From the sequence record ON000910.1: a stretch of DNA of 64,000 nucleotides; one strand, given 5' to 3'. Of this stretch, positions 24,303 through 32,316 are shown piece by piece. The stretch's first letter is position 1; each line of letters opens with the position of its first letter. Under the pieces are notes generated by a model. The model saw only the letters and a program-made list of their open reading frames with translations, made no database searches and was not told the DNA's origin. The position numbers and the translations under genes are program-made.

Positions 24303-25345
24303 TATGCATTCTCCAAAGCTTCAGCACGAAGCGCCGAGAAGATAGATTTAACTTTCGTCTTAACTTCAGTCGATTCGTCAAGCGTATCTGCATACTCAGC
24401 AACATAGTCGTCAATGTCTTTGATCGATTTGATGTCTTCAGCAACATCTTTCTTGATATCTAATTCATCAAGTGTTTGACACGCATGTGCGATTTGTGCA
24501 ATACGGTCTTCGACGACATCAAACGAGATTTCTCGCTTGTCGCTTGAACGACGTTCAACGATAATCTTGACGTTACGGTTTTCATAGCTCGGGATTGTTT
24601 TCGGGTCAAACGTCTCGGCATCAAAGTAAAGCTTTGTATGCCAACAGTTAGGGTTCTCGATAAACTCCATTTCATGAGTTTCAGTGTCGAACAACCAAAA
24701 ACCACGCTTGTCGTCAGCATCTGCAAGTGTCAATGTATATGGAGTACCAAGATACTTGATATTACCCGCTTCAGACTGAGTATGAAAGTGCCCAGACCAT
24801 ACTTGCTTGTACTTCTTCAAGAAGCCAGCATCAAGACAGCCCGTTGCTTTCTGACCGCGATGAAATTCAAAACCATTTAGTTCGAAGTGACCGACACAGT
24901 ATTCAGATGTCGAATTTTTGATGAATTCATCGATTTCAACCGCATTTTCTTTACAAATCCACGGAATAATGTCGATTTTCACGCCATCAAACTCAACCGT
25001 TGTCGGTTTTTCATAGATAGTCACATCAGGGACAATGCTCAGTACTTCATACGGTGTATTAGGTACAATGCATTCACGCAAGTGCATGTCATGGTTACCC
25101 ACTAGAACGTGAGTGTCATATCCCTTCAGCATGCCATTTAGATACGTTCGCTGAAACATCAATGTTTCTTGAGTCGCACCGCGTCGAACATCAAACCAGT
25201 CGCCTAGCTGAATGATCTGTTTTACACCGCGCTCTTCAAGTTCAGCAAACATAAAATCGAAGAATTCTCGTTGGTAGTTTTGAACCCACAAGTCGTCATC
25301 TTTAATGCCGATATGTAAGTCACCAACCAGTGCTATTTTGCTCAT
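24302..25345 (-). CDS. 47: Recombination endonuclease nuclease subunit (Mre11/SbcD-like)
   Basis: GDLHIG, GDWFD, GNHD, GHFH. Confidence 0.96.
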   Translation of the reverse strand: MSKIALVGDLHIGIKDDDLWVQNYQREFFDFMFAELEERGVKQIIQLGDWFDVRRGATQETLMFQRTYLNGMLKGYDTHVLVGNHDMHLRECIVPNTPYEVLSIVPDVTIYEKPTTVEFDGVKIDIIPWICKENAVEIDEFIKNSTSEYCVGHFELNGFEFHRGQKATGCLDAGFLKKYKQVWSGHFHTQSEAGNIKYLGTPYTLTLADADDKRGFWLFDTETHEMEFIENPNCWHTKLYFDAETFDPKTIPSYENRNVKIIVERRSSDKREISFDVVEDRIAQIAHACQTLDELDIKKDVAEDIKSIKDIDDYVAEYADTLDESTEVKTKVKSIFSALRAEALENA

Positions 25346-26643: not shown

Positions 26644-27104
26644 TACTGCTCCTTAGTATCGACCTGAATCTTTAAATGGTCGATGATGAATTGAAATTGT
26701 GTATGTGTTGAAAATGGAAGAATCTTACCATCTTTCTGAGCGTGAAGCTTCAGTTCATGACGATCTTCAGCAATCAATAGTGTATCGCGAGTATGCTCGA
26801 CTTCTTGAAAGTCAGTGTACATTACATCAACGTTTAATTGCTTACCGAGCGTATCAAACCAAGCGCGTTGTTGTTCAGCAATAACCGAAACTTTGCTCAA
26901 AACGGCAATGAATGAAATCTTTTGATTTAAGAGAAAATCAAGGACAGCAGTTGACGGTAGACGCTCATAAAGCTTGACTTCAATTGCTTTATTGAGTACG
27001 TTGTCACGCTCTTTTTTCTCAAGCTGGTCGATTTGAGGCGCACCTGCAATTGCAAACCCAAGAGTGTCATCAGATAGAATGTTGCTCGTTTCAATATAAA
27101 TCAT
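26643..27104 (-). CDS. Hypothetical protein
   Basis: ORF after the promoter GTTTAAC-17-TATAAT (27128-27157). Confidence 0.7.
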   Translation of the reverse strand: MIYIETSNILSDDTLGFAIAGAPQIDQLEKKERDNVLNKAIEVKLYERLPSTAVLDFLLNQKISFIAVLSKVSVIAEQQRAWFDTLGKQLNVDVMYTDFQEVEHTRDTLLIAEDRHELKLHAQKDGKILPFSTHTQFQFIIDHLKIQVDTKEQ

Positions 27105-27151
27105 AATGTTTCCTTCAATGTTTGAGTATTATATCTAACAAATACGAGCAG

Positions 27152-27406
27152 TTAAACTATTCGTTTTGCTCGTTCTGTAAGTGCATCTGAGAATTCCGCT
27201 TCTAATGTTTCTAATGTATCGTCTAATGTTACAGTAACAACACACATAGAGTCAAGAAGAATAAATGTCACTTTTTCTTCGTCTGTCTTGATTGTTAAAT
27301 CTTCGTCAGGCATAATCATGAATTCTCGCGACCAGAATGCGAAAGACGTAGCAGGGCAGTCTAGCATATCACGTACAGTAGTAAGACGAATTGATTCAGT
27401 AATCAT
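27152..27406 (-). CDS. Hypothetical early protein
   Basis: Start at 27406, downstream of the promoter cassette. Confidence 0.7.
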   Translation of the reverse strand: MITESIRLTTVRDMLDCPATSFAFWSREFMIMPDEDLTIKTDEEKVTFILLDSMCVVTVTLDDTLETLEAEFSDALTERAKRIV

Positions 27407-27430
27407 AATGTACTCTTTGTTTTCGTATCT

Positions 27431-27482
27431 CGTTTCGATAGAGCTATAATACGCAAAAAGGGTTGCCGAAGCAACCCTTTTA
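27431..27482 (-). promoter_or_regulatory. Terminator/early-promoter cassette, near-identical to 12681-12731
   Basis: 40 bp identical (27442-27481 vs 12692-12731). Confidence 0.8.
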
Positions 27483-27498
27483 TTCAAATAATTTCAAA

Positions 27499-28146
27499 TT
27501 ATTTTGTCCAAACTACCGAAGCACCTGAACCAGATTTCTTGTAACCGTACTTTGAAAGGTCTGGAATACGTTGAAAGCTGTCTTTCGCTGTAACTACACC
27601 GCGAGTAGCAATTTCTTTAGCCACGTCTCTTGTTGCATTACCTGCTTCAATCTGCATAGACAGATCTGGATATTCTTGAGCAATGAATTGCATCATGATA
27701 TCGTTTTTGCTTTTACCACTGATCACGTTCAACACAGTTTGAGTAATGTCAGTACCGCGAGTGATATGGAAAACTTTACCACGAGCACGAGACTCAACAT
27801 CACGAATAATCTCTGCTTCGACTTCTTCAGGTACAACGTTCAGTACGTAAGAAGTAAACGCCGTATCGAATGATTCCCCATTTGGGATAGTCAGACTGAC
27901 ATCAGTCCAACCATCAGCAGATGTACCATTGAATTTGTCATATGCATACGTTTTGATGCCTTCAGAGCGTAAAAATTCAGCGTTACGACCGTATTTACCA
28001 GCACCATAGTCAAGAGCAGTACCACCCGGTGTAAACATACCTTTTTTGTATAGTTTAACTAGTGCTGCTACTTCTTTACCACGTATCGACGTTGCTGCGG
28101 AACTGTACTTTTGTACTTCAGTTAAAAATTCACCAAATTGCTTCAT
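27499..28146 (-). CDS. Class I SAM-dependent methyltransferase, candidate internal virion protein
   Basis: ALDYGAGKYG motif I, YAYD, YVLNVV; start MKQFGEFLTE at 28146 with AGGTG RBS. Confidence 0.75.
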   Translation of the reverse strand: MKQFGEFLTEVQKYSSAATSIRGKEVAALVKLYKKGMFTPGGTALDYGAGKYGRNAEFLRSEGIKTYAYDKFNGTSADGWTDVSLTIPNGESFDTAFTSYVLNVVPEEVEAEIIRDVESRARGKVFHITRGTDITQTVLNVISGKSKNDIMMQFIAQEYPDLSMQIEAGNATRDVAKEIATRGVVTAKDSFQRIPDLSKYGYKKSGSGASVVWTK

Positions 28147-28153
28147 TGTACAC

Positions 28154-29599
28154 CTACTTAATATCAATATCAATCAGATAGTTCGTTGCGTTAACGCTGA
28201 ACTCAATCAAAGTACCGTCAACCGAAACGTCAACGCCGTTTTCAACGATGTTTTCCATCATCGAGTAAAGTGTTTCTTGATCAAGCATCGCTTCAGAGAA
28301 AGATTGACCAACCTTGAATGAACTGAACTGATCATTTGCAAGAGCACGAATCAGTGAATCAACATCATCAACCATTTCAGTCACTGGACGTAGACTAGAC
28401 ATGATATTCGGGTGGAATACACGATTCGACTCAGCCATTGTTGAAAATGCAGTCACTGTTTGACGCTCAGGGGTAACACAACCATCGAACGATAGCATAG
28501 CTTCAGCAAATGCTTTACAGTCAAAACGTTTCACGCCTTTACGTTCCATCATCGCAATCATATCAAGAAGCGGGTAACCTGCTTCAGATAATTCAACGCG
28601 ATATTCTTCACACACACGACCTGCACGCATAGCATGTTCCGCGTTTGTTAGAACAATACTTGTGTTGTTGTGTTTCAGCTTCCAACCGTTGTCAAAATAC
28701 GCTTCTTTCACATCAACAAGATTTTGCCATGCAGTCGATGTCAGTGGCGCAGTCGCGATTTCTTTCGTGAAAACGTTCTGAGCATGTTCAATCATGGTGA
28801 TGTTCTGTTTCAGATCGTATGCTTTGAAGCCTTCTAGCATCGGCAAGCCAGTATCGTCTTTACGTTCACGAGCGTATGATACGTCTTTCGCTTCTTTTAC
28901 AATGAACAAGTCCATGATTTTACGGTTCAGTGCAGCCAATGTCAGTGCATTTTTACCAGACTTGATTTTCATCTCAGTGATGTCAGACAGTTCAGCTTTT
29001 GAGTCAACCGATTCAACAGTCACATAAACGTCACCAAGCTCGATGTTTTCAGCCATTGACAGTACTTCGGAGGCTGAATTGTCGTCGATTGATAGCGATT
29101 CAATTACAAGCTTATCAGAATCAGCAAGATTAATTTTCATTTCACGCATAGGGAAAACAACGTGAATGTCATTTTTCTTATAACCAAGCTTAGTCGCTTC
29201 AGCAACAACTTGATCTAAGTAACCGCCTTTAATCACGATGCTAGGAAGACGCGCTTCAGTACACATGATCATAGACTTAACTTGCTGTAGCTCATGTGCT
29301 GGCAATGATAAGAATTCGTTTTCCATAAGCAAGTTGATTGTGCTTACGTTCTCGCTCAGATTGATATCGAAGTTTTTCTCATCGACGTTTTTATCTTCAG
29401 CAAGTTTAGTACCCATGATAGATTTAAGCTCATTTGCCTTTTCCATCATGCCGATAGTTGTTTCAACGCCTTTGCCTTTGCTGAACTCAGTAGATGCAGT
29501 GCCTAGCTCAACAATAACTTGACCAAACTTAGGGTAGATTTTACCACCCTGAGTTTGACGGCGATTTTCACTCAGAAATGAGTCAAAGTTACCTAACAT
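28154..29599 (-). CDS. Hypothetical protein with a degenerate P-loop-like N-terminus, candidate internal virion protein
   Basis: MLGNFDSFLSE; YPKFGQVIVELGTASTEFSKGKG. Confidence 0.6.
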   Translation of the reverse strand: MLGNFDSFLSENRRQTQGGKIYPKFGQVIVELGTASTEFSKGKGVETTIGMMEKANELKSIMGTKLAEDKNVDEKNFDINLSENVSTINLLMENEFLSLPAHELQQVKSMIMCTEARLPSIVIKGGYLDQVVAEATKLGYKKNDIHVVFPMREMKINLADSDKLVIESLSIDDNSASEVLSMAENIELGDVYVTVESVDSKAELSDITEMKIKSGKNALTLAALNRKIMDLFIVKEAKDVSYARERKDDTGLPMLEGFKAYDLKQNITMIEHAQNVFTKEIATAPLTSTAWQNLVDVKEAYFDNGWKLKHNNTSIVLTNAEHAMRAGRVCEEYRVELSEAGYPLLDMIAMMERKGVKRFDCKAFAEAMLSFDGCVTPERQTVTAFSTMAESNRVFHPNIMSSLRPVTEMVDDVDSLIRALANDQFSSFKVGQSFSEAMLDQETLYSMMENIVENGVDVSVDGTLIEFSVNATNYLIDIDIK

Positions 29600-29608
29600 G
29601 TTAATTCC

Positions 29609-30121
29609 TTAATCGTAAAATTTCTGTAAGTTAAGTGGTTCTTTCTGTTCATCTGGTTGAGCTTTAGCAGTCTTGCCAGATTCGTAAGAATTGACACGTT
29701 CTAACATCTGTTGAAGAAAATCGAAATCAGTTTCTTCACCATCAATCGAGTAGTTAGACGAATCACATAAGAATACTTTATATTTAATCGCTGTATCTTT
29801 TCTTTCTTTCTTAATACGTTGTACAAACGCATTGAAGCAAATACGAGTGATATAAGCGTGTGGGTTGTTATACTTGTCAGTGTCGAAGTTCTTGATATAG
29901 CGCAAGCAATGTTCGATTGCGTCACCAATCATCTCTTCTTTCCATGTTGCAGTATACCCACTAAAATTGTAACGGCGAGATAAATTCTCGCTAATCTTCA
30001 TGATACTGATTGCTACCACGTCAGGGACGGGAATTGCAGCATCAGGGTGTTTCTTCATTTCGCTTTTCCATTCGCATAAAGATGCGTACAGGGCTTTATT
30101 ATCTACATAATGATTTTTCAT
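29609..30121 (-). CDS. 55: Late-transcription sigma factor
   Basis: HYVDNK, NFSGYT..WKEEMIGD, NPHAYIT. Confidence 0.96.
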   Translation of the reverse strand: MKNHYVDNKALYASLCEWKSEMKKHPDAAIPVPDVVAISIMKISENLSRRYNFSGYTATWKEEMIGDAIEHCLRYIKNFDTDKYNNPHAYITRICFNAFVQRIKKERKDTAIKYKVFLCDSSNYSIDGEETDFDFLQQMLERVNSYESGKTAKAQPDEQKEPLNLQKFYD

Positions 30122-30129
30122 GTCACACC

Positions 30130-31029
30130 TTATACCGTTACTGCGTGAGTGTATGACAGCTTAGAACTGTTCGCAAGAACACCAAGATTATCCCAATCGA
30201 TTTCAACTGCACCCGTTTGATTATCTTCTAATGGTGCAACGGTCAATGCGTATCGAGCAATCACACCGTAAATTGGGTGGAATGATTTTGAGTCTTGTGT
30301 TTTATATTGATATGCAATACCAGCGTCTGTTGCTTTGTCAAAGTTGTATGGGCTGAATACTAAACTTGAGATTTCATAATCACCAAGTTCTTTCTTAACA
30401 CCAATTGTTACGTAGTCAGTCGTTGCATACTTGTCATGAACTAGATATAACCCAGAGTCACATTTATACATGCTAGTATCACCAATCTGTGTAGCCATAC
30501 CAGTGCCCGTCAATAGACCAAATGCTTCACCACCTGCTACGATATATGTACCTGTACAACCCGTTGACTTTTCAATCTCAGCAGCAGATGCATGGACGAA
30601 CGAGTATAATTCTCGACCTTTATCAAAACGGTTAGTAATAGCAGATAGCGTAATTGCACTACCAACAGTTGAAATACTGTTTAGTGCATCGATGATATTA
30701 GTGTTGATGTCATCTGCGATTTGATCAGCAATAGAATCTGTGATAATCGATTCATTGACACCAAGTGCTTGCATGTCTTGAATTGTTTCAAGTGAGATTT
30801 CAGTTTTTAGCTTTGATGATTGAACTTGTGCATACCAGCGATCAAGTCTAAAACCATGTGGCAGCCACCCACTCGCGTCATCAGCTTCAGCTACAGATTT
30901 GAAACCGAACGCAGTCGCAACCGGTTGAGTTGTTGGCTGTTCTGAAACGATTTGCGTAAATATTAACGGGTATAGTCGTTTTTGAACAGAAACAATGTCT
31001 GGTAAACCGTTACTATTAGATACAGTCAT
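30130..31029 (-). CDS. Capsid-protein-family (gp23/gp24-like, vertex-type) protein
   Basis: QPTTQPVATAF, SKLKTEISLETIQD, IADDIN; perfect TATAAATA at 31086-31093. Confidence 0.75.
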   Translation of the reverse strand: MTVSNSNGLPDIVSVQKRLYPLIFTQIVSEQPTTQPVATAFGFKSVAEADDASGWLPHGFRLDRWYAQVQSSKLKTEISLETIQDMQALGVNESIITDSIADQIADDINTNIIDALNSISTVGSAITLSAITNRFDKGRELYSFVHASAAEIEKSTGCTGTYIVAGGEAFGLLTGTGMATQIGDTSMYKCDSGLYLVHDKYATTDYVTIGVKKELGDYEISSLVFSPYNFDKATDAGIAYQYKTQDSKSFHPIYGVIARYALTVAPLEDNQTGAVEIDWDNLGVLANSSKLSYTHAVTV

Positions 31030-31084: not shown

Positions 31085-31324
31085 TTATTTATATGTCTGG
31101 TTATCAACCCATTGCTTGAGTTCTGGAAGATGACCTATGTATGTATCACCATGCATAGCAAGAGGCACGCGAATGTTGCGCACCCCACCAAGTTTCTCAT
31201 GCAATTTATCGATATCAGATTGAGACTGTAACTCTATTACAGTGTACGGGACGTTTTTGAACTTACAGAGGGAAATTGCGTGACGACAGCCGTCACAGTT
31301 GGGAATTGTGTATATCGTTATCAT
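31085..31324 (-). CDS. Glutaredoxin
   Basis: YTIPNCDGC, VP, YIG. Confidence 0.9.
   Translation of the reverse strand: MITIYTIPNCDGCRHAISLCKFKNVPYTVIELQSQSDIDKLHEKLGGVRNIRVPLAMHGDTYIGHLPELKQWVDNQTYK
31086..31093 (-). promoter_or_regulatory. T4 late promoter
   Basis: Exact TATAAATA. Confidence 0.75.
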
Positions 31325-31371
31325 TTCTTCACCTCGACCTATATTATACGTCTGCCAAGGTGGTTATTAAA

Positions 31372-31448: not shown

Positions 31449-31470
31449 AAAAAAAGCCCCTTTCGGGGCT
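31449..31470 (-). terminator. Rho-independent terminator
   Basis: AGCCCC-gaaa-GGGGCT plus T-run. Confidence 0.85.
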
Positions 31471-31488: not shown

Positions 31489-32316
31489 TTATAAACCGTG
31501 AGATTTTTTGAAAGTGTCTAGACGCTTTTCGATTGTGTGAGCTTCTAGTTCAATAATGATGTACCAATCTTTGTATTTACCACGCTGTTCAAATGACACT
31601 GACTTACAACCTTTGTGAGTAGTATTCATTACGATTTCTGCGATTGCGTCACGAGCAGCTTGACCACGTGCGTTTACTTTCTTAGCAGGCTTAGGCGCTT
31701 CAGCTTTCTTTTCAGCTTTCGGTGCAGGTGCTGCTACAGGTTCAACTGCTTTAGTATTTTCAGCTTTCTTAGCTTCGTGATCTGCTTTGATAGCGTTGAA
31801 TGTTGATGTTGCAACGCAACGAAGTTGACCTTCAGTTTCAGCTTTACGACCTTTCACGTATAGAGACTTGATGTGTACTGGTTGAAAACGCTTAGTCAAA
31901 CGATCTGTTTTCTGAACTACTTCAATTTCACCTTGAGCGTTTTCGAAGAAAACAACGTACTTGCTATCTACAGCATCAGGGTTAGATACAGTTGAGCAAC
32001 GCTTTGCATCGCCACCTAGTTGACGGTGTACACGCTTCCAGATAGCACCGTGACCACGTTCGTTGTAATCAGTGTAAGCAATCGCGTGAGCCATTTCGTG
32101 AGTGATTGTGATGATTTGCTCTTCTTTAGTACGAGCGTTCAAGAATTTTTCAGAAAGACGTAGTGTTTTAGTACGGTAGTTACAATCACCTAGTGCAGCT
32201 TTACGTTTTGAAAATTCGAATGACCAACCTTCTGCAATCAGATCGCGCTTCATCAAGTTGTTACCAGACATAAGGTCGATTGCGATAGCTTTCATTTCTG
32301 CTTTAGTGATTGTCAT
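31489..32316 (-). CDS. SprT-like zinc metalloprotease
   Basis: ALGDCNY..K.LRLS, ITHEMAHA, HGAIWK. Confidence 0.85.
   Translation of the reverse strand: MTITKAEMKAIAIDLMSGNNLMKRDLIAEGWSFEFSKRKAALGDCNYRTKTLRLSEKFLNARTKEEQIITITHEMAHAIAYTDYNERGHGAIWKRVHRQLGGDAKRCSTVSNPDAVDSKYVVFFENAQGEIEVVQKTDRLTKRFQPVHIKSLYVKGRKAETEGQLRCVATSTFNAIKADHEAKKAENTKAVEPVAAPAPKAEKKAEAPKPAKKVNARGQAARDAIAEIVMNTTHKGCKSVSFEQRGKYKDWYIIIELEAHTIEKRLDTFKKSHGL

Follow-up and report, generated by a model that had tools for sequence, protein, structure and literature searches.

Capsid-targeting-like leaders on a putative methyltransferase and its degenerate kinase-like neighbour in KVP40-like Vibrio phages: candidates for injected head proteins

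Introduction

The internal proteins and Alt of phage T4 are the classic examples of proteins that are injected into the host together with phage DNA. The known T4 cargo of this kind consists of a few small basic proteins, one of which is a restriction inhibitor, and one ADP-ribosyltransferase. Here we describe two adjacent genes in a 64,000-nucleotide stretch of sequence record ON000910.1 (the whole stretch is called the window below) whose products resemble this cargo at their N-termini. One encodes a protein of 215 amino acids that is predicted to be a class I S-adenosylmethionine (SAM)-dependent methyltransferase, and the other, directly upstream, encodes a protein of 481 amino acids that appears to be a degenerate relative of zeta-toxin-like kinases. 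Both begin with a short leader similar to the capsid-targeting sequence (CTS) of the T4 internal proteins.

The requirements for packaging have been mapped in T4. For IPIII, the 10 N-terminal residues are sufficient for packaging, and within the CTS residues 4 and 7 serve targeting whereas residues 8 and 10 serve processing (PMC9026906). Alt shows that an enzyme can follow this route: it is packaged in the head, processed by the prohead protease gp21 and, once injected, modifies host targets immediately (PMC9026906). The presence of variable, CTS-bearing internal proteins in T-even phages is established (PMC3012670, PMC9026906).

The closest precedent for a packaged methyltransferase comes from an unrelated phage, P1. 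The DarB protein of P1, which protects against type I restriction, contains a methyltransferase domain. It is packaged in the head and believed to enter the cell at infection, and its N-terminal signal also loads a foreign protein (PMC9024508). Unlike the proteins described here, DarB is a 250 kDa multidomain protein whose incorporation needs other Dar proteins. None of the searches made brought up a similarity to DarB, although the pair was not compared with it directly. A first-pass annotation of the window, made by a model from the letters and open reading frames, stated that it knew of no characterised injected methyltransferase of this kind. DarB qualifies that statement as a packaged precedent. 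In our literature search, no paper named these genes or connected a CTS with a methyltransferase.

The part of the window that contains the two genes (27000-30200) matched Vibrio phage XZ1 at 100% identity and phages ValKK3, phi-ST2 and Va3 at 99%, and KVP40, nt-1 and other Schizotequatrovirus phages aligned to it at 78-85% identity. By the coordinates of the XZ1 match, the window corresponds to the final 64 kb of the record of XZ1, a KVP40-like relative of T4. All genes discussed are on the minus strand, and the coordinates of the features are collected in Table 1.

N-terminal leaders of the two proteins

The N-termini of the ipII and ipIII products in the T4 record (NC_000866) have an aromatic residue at position 4, Phe7, Ile8 and Glu10, in agreement with the first-pass annotation, which had used them for comparison. 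The 215-amino-acid protein begins MKQFGEFLTE and places Phe4, Phe7, Leu8 and Glu10 at the same spacing. Its upstream neighbour begins, as had been read earlier, MLGNFDSFLSE and places Phe5, Phe8, Leu9 and Glu11 at the T4 spacing shifted by one residue. The earlier proposal of capsid-targeting-like leaders was borne out in that, with this shift allowed for the 481-amino-acid protein, both leaders match all four mapped positions of the T4 CTS. In the Vibrio-phage clade, positions 1, 2, 4, 7, 8 and 10 of the methyltransferase leader were conserved (F/L at 4, F/Y at 7, Leu8 and Glu10) and positions 3, 5, 6 and 9 were variable. Among 11 orthologues of the 481-amino-acid protein, Phe5 and Leu9 were invariant, and Phe8 (Tyr in one) and Glu11 were each found in 10. 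Both structure models showed the leader as a low-confidence appendage.

The rarity of the leader was assessed in the KVP40 genome, which was joined from five annotated stretches and scanned at every ATG with at least 50 codons downstream. The pattern was defined from the four mapped T4 positions only, with a one-residue register shift allowed. Chance predicted 0.065 matches among 386 gene starts, 386 being an assumed gene number entered into the script, and 0.37 among 2192 ATG starts. Three matches were found, comprising the orthologues of the two adjacent genes and one internal ATG. In the window, a stricter pattern drawn up after the fact matched just these two genes among 591 candidate starts.

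The proteins with which such a leader would interact are encoded by the same phages. KVP40 carries, outside the region that corresponds to the window, genes 67, 68, 21 and 22, which supply a gp21-type protease and the scaffolding core. The gp21 of KVP40 shares 49% identity with that of T4 and 94.8% with that of XZ1 (record position 24432-25070). Residues 62-65 of T4 gp23 read FLTE, the same tetrapeptide as the end of the 215-amino-acid protein's leader, and KVP40 gp23 has Leu-x-Glu at the position aligned to it. We take T4 gp23 to be cleaved after residue 65.

Because both leaders match the mapped CTS, because the pattern is rare in KVP40 and the two genes are adjacent, because the leader recurs on unrelated enzymes, one of them of the Alt-like class (see below), and because gp21 is present and the genes lie directly behind head gene 24, the reading with the best support is that the two proteins, and probably also KVP40.0290, would be internal head proteins and share a functional class with Alt and the internal proteins of T4. 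We put the probability that both are packaged in the head and injected with the DNA at about 0.55.

The likeness to IPI, IPII and IPIII of T4 lies in the 10-residue leader with the same residue types at the targeting (4 and 7) and processing (8 and 10) positions, in the gp21 orthologue of the same genome and in the arrangement of two leader genes side by side, as in ipII and ipIII. The predicted mature methyltransferase is also mildly basic, with an isoelectric point (pI) of 8.9 compared with 8.9-9.7 for the T4 internal proteins. Past the leader, however, there is no sequence similarity, and whereas the T4 internal proteins are small and basic, the cargo proposed here would pair a folded enzyme with an acidic multidomain protein of 52 kDa.

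Two other uses of the leader were considered. A signal peptide or membrane anchor was rejected by inspection, as the leader has 10 residues and includes charged ones. KVP40 encodes ClpP, and the idea that the leader is a ClpP degradation tag found no support.

Recurrence of the leader in other proteins and phages

A looser scan of the whole KVP40 genome revealed one more sizeable protein, KVP40.0290 (372 amino acids), with a leader that ends F-M-E-E. Its product matched a PARP-type ADP-ribosyltransferase family (E 1.3e-4; 22 bits, with the cut-off at 26.7), has a pI of 4.7 and may be the Alt counterpart of KVP40-like phages. A similar association was found outside the Vibrio phages. T4-like metagenomic contigs encode methyltransferase relatives of about 38% identity at another locus, next to dexA, rnh and rnlB. 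These relatives had the same type of leader, and on one of these contigs the only other leader-bearing protein was a 1149-amino-acid PARP-domain protein. PARP-like proteins thus share the leader type of the methyltransferase both in KVP40 and on a T4-like contig, which is the point of likeness to T4 Alt; Alt itself, however, transfers ADP-ribose from NAD, whereas methyl transfer from SAM is predicted here, and the enzymes are not homologous.

Within the methyltransferase family, a loose form of the leader pattern occurred in 40 of 114 members, compared with 3.3% of KVP40 ATG starts. About five members begin directly at the conserved catalytic core and have no leader, which places the leader outside the catalytic fold. 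On these comparisons the leader is a separable, recurrent module.

The kinase family to which the 481-amino-acid protein is related showed the leader as well. The hydrophobic pair at positions 4 and 7 was present in 21 of its 36 representatives and the strict T4 pattern in 11. A tblastn search with one family member detected relatives in 216 cultured phage records, including RB43 and phages of Klebsiella, Aeromonas and Cronobacter. The relative in RB43, ORF241c (L018:3001-3834), lies near hoc and inh and has a 7-of-8 match to the late promoter upstream.

The leader was also observed on a different, large-phage contig (L015) that carries genes for a T4-type RNA ligase 1, Thg1 and a Ro-like/TROVE protein. 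There, a methyltransferase relative and its upstream neighbour both had leaders of the M-K-L-R-D-L-L-V-E type (L015:9242-9889 and L015:10001-10648); the neighbour is an unrelated protein of 215 amino acids.

The distribution of the leader bears on the alternative that both proteins are cytoplasmic enzymes that are never packaged. Their N-terminus would then be a short amphipathic helix, used for example in oligomerisation, translation efficiency or partner binding, and its likeness to a CTS would be convergent. Such a helix would accord with the many methyltransferase relatives, on contigs that do not look T4-like, that start with a looser M-K-L-x-E-L-F-E helix. The pattern is nonetheless too rare in KVP40 (0.065 expected among 386 genes) to reflect a general N-terminal bias of the phage, and it is found on three unrelated enzyme folds, one of which belongs to the Alt-like class that T4 packages. 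The leader also closes with the protease motif Leu-x-Glu, is not packed against the fold in either model and is missing from some family members. We regard this alternative as unlikely, although it deserves serious attention.

The predicted 215-amino-acid methyltransferase

Searches of Pfam, NCBIfam, PADLOC and PDB sequences with both window proteins returned nothing significant, and the identification of both required alignments, structure prediction and profile searches. For the 215-amino-acid protein, 233 homologues were found, of which 60 were aligned for an AlphaFold model. The model had a mean predicted local distance difference test score (pLDDT) of 90.4, and residues 1-20, at about 50, were its only uncertain part. 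Each of the 50 top PDB fold matches was either a SAM methyltransferase or a closely related SAM-binding protein of class I (E about 1e-5, probability 0.99-1.0, TM-score 0.35-0.57), and a viral structure library agreed with this fold. The assignment to class I SAM methyltransferases, which the first-pass annotation had based on the motifs LDYGAGKYG (residues 45-53), YAYD (67-70) and YVLNV (100-104), was consistent with this confident model and its concordant matches, and the start and the motifs proved correct on rereading.

The SAM-binding positions were invariant. Asp46, Gly48, Ala49 and Gly50 of motif I and Asp70 at the end of strand beta-2 were invariant in the 60 homologues, as were Phe93, Leu102, Asn103, Val104, His127, Arg130, Gln192 and Pro195. 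From general knowledge of class I methyltransferases, we take Asp70 to be the usual acidic residue that binds the SAM ribose. The Pfam family Methyltransf_23 matched 53 of the 60 relatives at E values up to 0.01 (best 1.8e-9).

The nearest named family was TIGR04096, a dnd-associated putative methyltransferase, which 34 of the 60 relatives matched at E values up to 0.01 (best 6.6e-8). In these relatives the match covers positions 14-87 of the 478 in the family model, corresponding to the N-terminal half of the Rossmann fold, and residues 100-104 with the YVLNV motif fall inside it. The score was 11.1 bits for the 215-amino-acid protein and 20-27 bits for relatives examined individually, compared with a cut-off of 150. 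The first-pass remark that YVLNV is reminiscent of methyltransferases beside phosphorothioation loci therefore touched on a real resemblance, but a distant one that lies far under the cut-off and does not amount to membership. The genes are in phage genomes and not beside dnd; the neighbours are phage genes 24, 55, a homologue of a-gt.4 and 47, and no anti-phage defence model in PADLOC matched. A literature search for the function of TIGR04096 found no paper describing it.

DNA, which had been suggested as a possible substrate, is not where the evidence points. No DNA methyltransferase family in Pfam or NCBIfam matched, and the translation contains no (D/N/S)PP(Y/F) or PC motif and no DNA target-recognition domain. 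None of the top 50 fold matches is a DNA methyltransferase; where a substrate is named, it is a small molecule, RNA or protein. As judged from the model, the protein looks closer to small-molecule, protein or RNA methyltransferases than to DNA methyltransferases, and it looks catalytically competent. It is thus very improbable, in our estimate, that the protein is a DNA-modification methyltransferase that acts during replication against restriction or phosphorothioate-dependent defence and whose leader is irrelevant. Such a function could be read into the weak, recurrent similarity to TIGR04096 and into a location within the interval that holds a DNA-modifying enzyme in T4, but that similarity amounts to 11-27 bits against 150 over a small part of the family model, the features of DNA methyltransferases named above are missing, and KVP40 has a separately annotated DNA methyltransferase, KVP40.0137.

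Cleavage behind the leader would leave a predicted mature methyltransferase of 205 residues and 22.4 kDa. The only [LI]-x-E site of the protein is that of the leader. Among cultured phages, tblastn detected the methyltransferase in KVP40-like Vibrio phages only (49 records). A relative was also observed on a 72 kb metagenomic contig (L016), where it lies in a row of three methyltransferase genes. This contig, which also has genes for a chitin synthase, GH19, GH16 and a polysaccharide deacetylase, appears closer to a giant virus of eukaryotes than to a phage.

The 481-amino-acid kinase relative

Full-length homologues of the 481-amino-acid protein were found in KVP40-like Vibrio phages only (13 clusters), and its gene adjoins the methyltransferase gene wherever gene tags exist. 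This constant adjacency suggests a shared role for the two products. The structure model was of moderate confidence (pLDDT 73.5), with residues 1-23 disordered (below 40), and the fold search gave no significant match (best E 0.04, to zeta/PezT and adenylate kinase). The window protein itself matched no Pfam family.

Homology was revealed only by a profile search of 1.84 billion representative proteins, which detected 48 relatives outside the KVP40-like Vibrio-phage clade (E 1e-3 to 5e-14), which match the protein over residues 12 to 230 approximately. Nine of ten relatives tested reached the Pfam threshold for Zeta_toxin, and three were similar to AAA_33, one of them above the threshold of that family. 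In the alignment, a GGKAYPKFG block common to both sides is followed in the relatives by a canonical P-loop. The 481-amino-acid protein, in contrast, has no Walker A motif (GxxxxGK[ST]), having lost the glycine-rich loop and its lysine, and the conserved motifs further downstream in the relatives are lost too. The first-pass description of a degenerate P-loop partner was therefore apt, as relatives with an intact loop reach the Zeta_toxin threshold and the Vibrio clade has lost the loop. By this comparison the protein is a pseudokinase, homologous over its N-terminal 200 residues or so to phage proteins with a canonical P-loop, but differing from zeta-toxin/AAA_33 kinases in the loss of these motifs and in about 250 extra C-terminal residues without a recognisable fold. 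No antitoxin-like partner gene was apparent next to its gene in the window.

Several intact kinase relatives (P0143, P0162, P0176, P0174 and P0180) have an apparent intein, judged by sequence alone, within the Walker A loop, which breaks after GGAGC and resumes at HNSGKGF. Inteins usually occupy functionally important sites, so the P-loop probably matters in the intact enzymes.

The mature 481-amino-acid protein is predicted to have a mass of 52 kDa and to be acidic (pI 4.8). Within it lie eight further [LI]-x-E sites, a property that recalls the scaffold proteins degraded by gp21. These sites, the lost catalytic loop, the proximity to head gene 24 and the name 'head morphogenesis protein', which one Klebsiella phage record gives to a gene of the kinase family, would suit proteins that are directed to the prohead and work solely within it, in assembly, scaffolding or DNA condensing, and are then degraded or retained instead of injected. 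We consider this quite unlikely. A purely structural role would hardly account for the invariance of SAM-binding residues across 60 diverged homologues, the sole [LI]-x-E site of the methyltransferase is in its leader, and the acidic pI of the 481-amino-acid protein is poorly suited to DNA condensation. On our assumption, no SAM is to be expected inside a sealed head.

Gene order and transcription signals

The T4 gene order in this region is nrdH, the 55.x genes, 55, a-gt.5, a-gt.4, a-gt.3, a-gt.2, mobB, a-gt, 47.1 and 47. The Vibrio phages have nrdH, 55, a-gt.4 and 47 in the T4 order, with gene 24 inserted ahead of 55. Beyond the terminator that follows the methyltransferase gene are two small unknown genes, the a-gt.4 homologue (DUF2654), a gp30.3 homologue, an NT5C-type nucleotidase gene and gene 47. 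The first-pass annotation had placed the pair at the locus where T4 keeps its DNA glucosyltransferase gene, a-gt. The pair does occupy the same variable 55-47 interval, but it lies between 55 and a-gt.4, at the place of a-gt.5 in T4; a-gt.4 separates this place from a-gt, and the two are not positionally equivalent.

Genes 24 and 55 and the genes for the 481- and 215-amino-acid proteins are separated by gaps of 7-9 nucleotides and are closed by a strong hairpin terminator, and on this layout the pair is part of a compact unit behind head gene 24. The terminator hairpin folds at -16.3 kcal/mol (z-score -3.9 against shuffles, from folding of the stretch). It was not listed by a scan for consensus terminators, and folding revealed it clearly. 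The hairpin is bordered by a T-run when read on the plus strand and by a U-run in the minus-strand transcript, so termination could occur in both directions.

Two candidate promoters precede the unit. The sigma-70-like site upstream of nrdH is a weak candidate for possible early transcription of the unit; sigma-70-like matches in the region were not above the shuffled expectation (17 found, 13.5 expected). The T4-type late-promoter consensus TATAAATA lies upstream of gene 24, and it is this position, not its frequency, that counts for it and is suggestive. Expression also bears on the alternative of cytoplasmic enzymes that are never packaged, which would fit the setting of the methyltransferase gene on other T4-like contigs, where its neighbours are of early type and no late-promoter consensus precedes it, and a unit that, in the window, includes gene 55, which is expressed ahead of the late genes.

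Table 1. Features of the window discussed in the text, with one KVP40 gene for comparison.
Feature	Coordinates	Strand	Remarks
Terminator-like hairpin, upstream edge of transcription unit	31455..31470	minus	6-bp stem with 5 GC pairs, then T-run
Sigma-70-like promoter candidate upstream of nrdH	31343..31370	minus	10/12 consensus matches
nrdH, glutaredoxin gene	31085..31324	minus	Orthologue of KVP40.0062; 55 nt gap to gene 24
T4-type late-promoter consensus TATAAATA	31086..31093	minus	57-64 nt upstream of gene 24 start
Gene 24, head vertex protein	30130..31029	minus	Pfam Gp23, E 2.7e-43; PHROG major head protein; annotated gp24 in KVP40; 8 nt gap to gene 55
Gene 55, late sigma factor	29609..30121	minus	PHROG 234, E 1.7e-58; annotated gp55 in KVP40; 9 nt gap to 481-amino-acid gene
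481-amino-acid gene	28154..29599	minus	KVP40.0065 orthologue; predicted order CTS-like leader, degenerate zeta-toxin/AAA_33-like kinase domain, C-terminal domains without known fold; 7 nt gap to 215-amino-acid gene
Leader of 481-amino-acid protein, codons 1-11	29567..29599	minus	Ends L-S-E; pLDDT below 40
Walker A P-loop remnant, residues 26-44	29468..29524	minus	AGGAGSGKGF in relatives; LGTAST, two-residue gap, EFSKGK in Vibrio clade
215-amino-acid gene	27499..28146	minus	ATG at 28146; KVP40.0066 orthologue; leader and predicted class I SAM-dependent methyltransferase; terminator next
Leader of 215-amino-acid protein, codons 1-10	28117..28146	minus	Ends F-L-T-E; pLDDT about 50
Methyltransferase motif I, glycine-rich SAM-binding loop	27988..28014	minus	Residues 45-53
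End of strand beta-2 with acidic residue	27937..27948	minus	Residues 67-70; strand 65-69 in model
Segment in and just past strand beta-4	27835..27849	minus	Residues 100-104
Intrinsic terminator	27456..27481	minus	UUCG loop and U-run, 18 nt past 215-amino-acid stop codon
KVP40.0290	KVP40 record 156073-157191, outside window		CTS-like leader; weak PARP-type match

Other features of the region were observed in passing. Gene 24 encodes a product of 299 amino acids, compared with 427 in T4, that has no counterpart of the first 12 residues of T4 gp24, and it adjoins gene 55 whereas the T4-type location is after gene 23. Upstream of nrdH, a gene for a 275-amino-acid protein (31489-32316; orthologue of KVP40.0061) encodes a HEMAH zinc-metalloprotease-like motif and a lysine/alanine-rich linker. 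The KVP40 record also includes genes annotated as folE, QueC-like, QueE-like and radical SAM (at about 70.6-75 kb, 133.5-137 kb and 153.7-154.6 kb), a set that suggests a 7-deazaguanine pathway. That these genes lead to modified DNA is our own supposition and only a possibility; if true, it would affect which host defences the phage meets.

Proposed role of the two proteins at infection

Several observations weigh against packaging and injection of a methyltransferase and its partner. The 215-amino-acid protein scores 15.5 bits with Methyltransf_23 and does not reach the Pfam threshold of 27. One orthologue of the 481-amino-acid protein, P0129, has Ala in place of the leader Glu, and because of the eight extra [LI]-x-E sites this protein could be fragmented by gp21 instead of matured. 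The mature methyltransferase showed no significant depletion of such sites (0-1 observed, about 1.25 expected per orthologue), nor was there depletion across the methyltransferase family, and this argument was dropped. The looser M-K-L-x-E-L-F-E leader, found on many members from viruses that are not obviously T4-like, could have another purpose. The late-promoter consensus TATAAATA was not enriched in the window (2 found, 2.59 expected). Gene 55, in the same unit, needs to be expressed before the late genes, and the timing of the pair's expression (early, late or both) is therefore ambiguous from the sequence. Finally, virion proteomes, N-terminal sequences and transcript data for KVP40-like phages were looked for in the literature, and none were found.

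If both proteins are nonetheless packaged, as we favour, the 10-11-residue leader would dock each of them to the scaffolding core of the prohead through its hydrophobic or aromatic residues (4 and 7 in the methyltransferase, 5 and 8 in the 481-amino-acid protein), and the gp21 protease would cut behind the Leu-x-Glu at the leader end. The head interior would then hold a 205-residue, mildly basic methyltransferase and a 52 kDa acidic pseudokinase. At infection both would exit the head together with the DNA, and in the new cell the methyltransferase would use host SAM before any phage gene expression. Its fold relatives suggest that the target would most likely be a host protein, RNA or small molecule and not DNA. 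The kinase-like partner, which has no ATP-binding loop, would most likely bind or scaffold and not act as an enzyme. We infer docking, cleavage, packaging, injection, catalytic activity, substrate and any cooperation of the two proteins from the comparisons above.

A wider role for the leader is also conceivable, which we offer tentatively and with rather less than even confidence. In T4-like and perhaps other large phages, the CTS leader may be a general address tag that loads a changing set of enzymes, including methyltransferases, zeta-toxin-like kinases and ADP-ribosyltransferases, for a first-strike injection. Within seconds of infection, the methyltransferase of KVP40-like phages would then methylate a protein, an RNA or a signalling molecule of the host, possibly guided by the pseudokinase, to disarm a defence or to reprogramme the cell.

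Relative to the internal proteins already described in T-even phages, what appears to be new here is a candidate for enzymatic cargo in a new phage group, together with a family of zeta-like kinases with a CTS-like tag. To our knowledge, methyl transfer is a chemistry not yet described for injected proteins of the T4 type. If the leader works as a CTS, KVP40-like phages would inject a methyltransferase, and the zeta-toxin-like kinases, a family with relatives in 216 records of cultured T4-like phages, would become candidate injected cargo. The 10-residue motif would in that case provide a handle for listing injected effectors in phage genomes and metagenomes. The finding would thus be relevant to how phages counter host defences ahead of their own gene expression, and such leaders may be of use for phage protein delivery.

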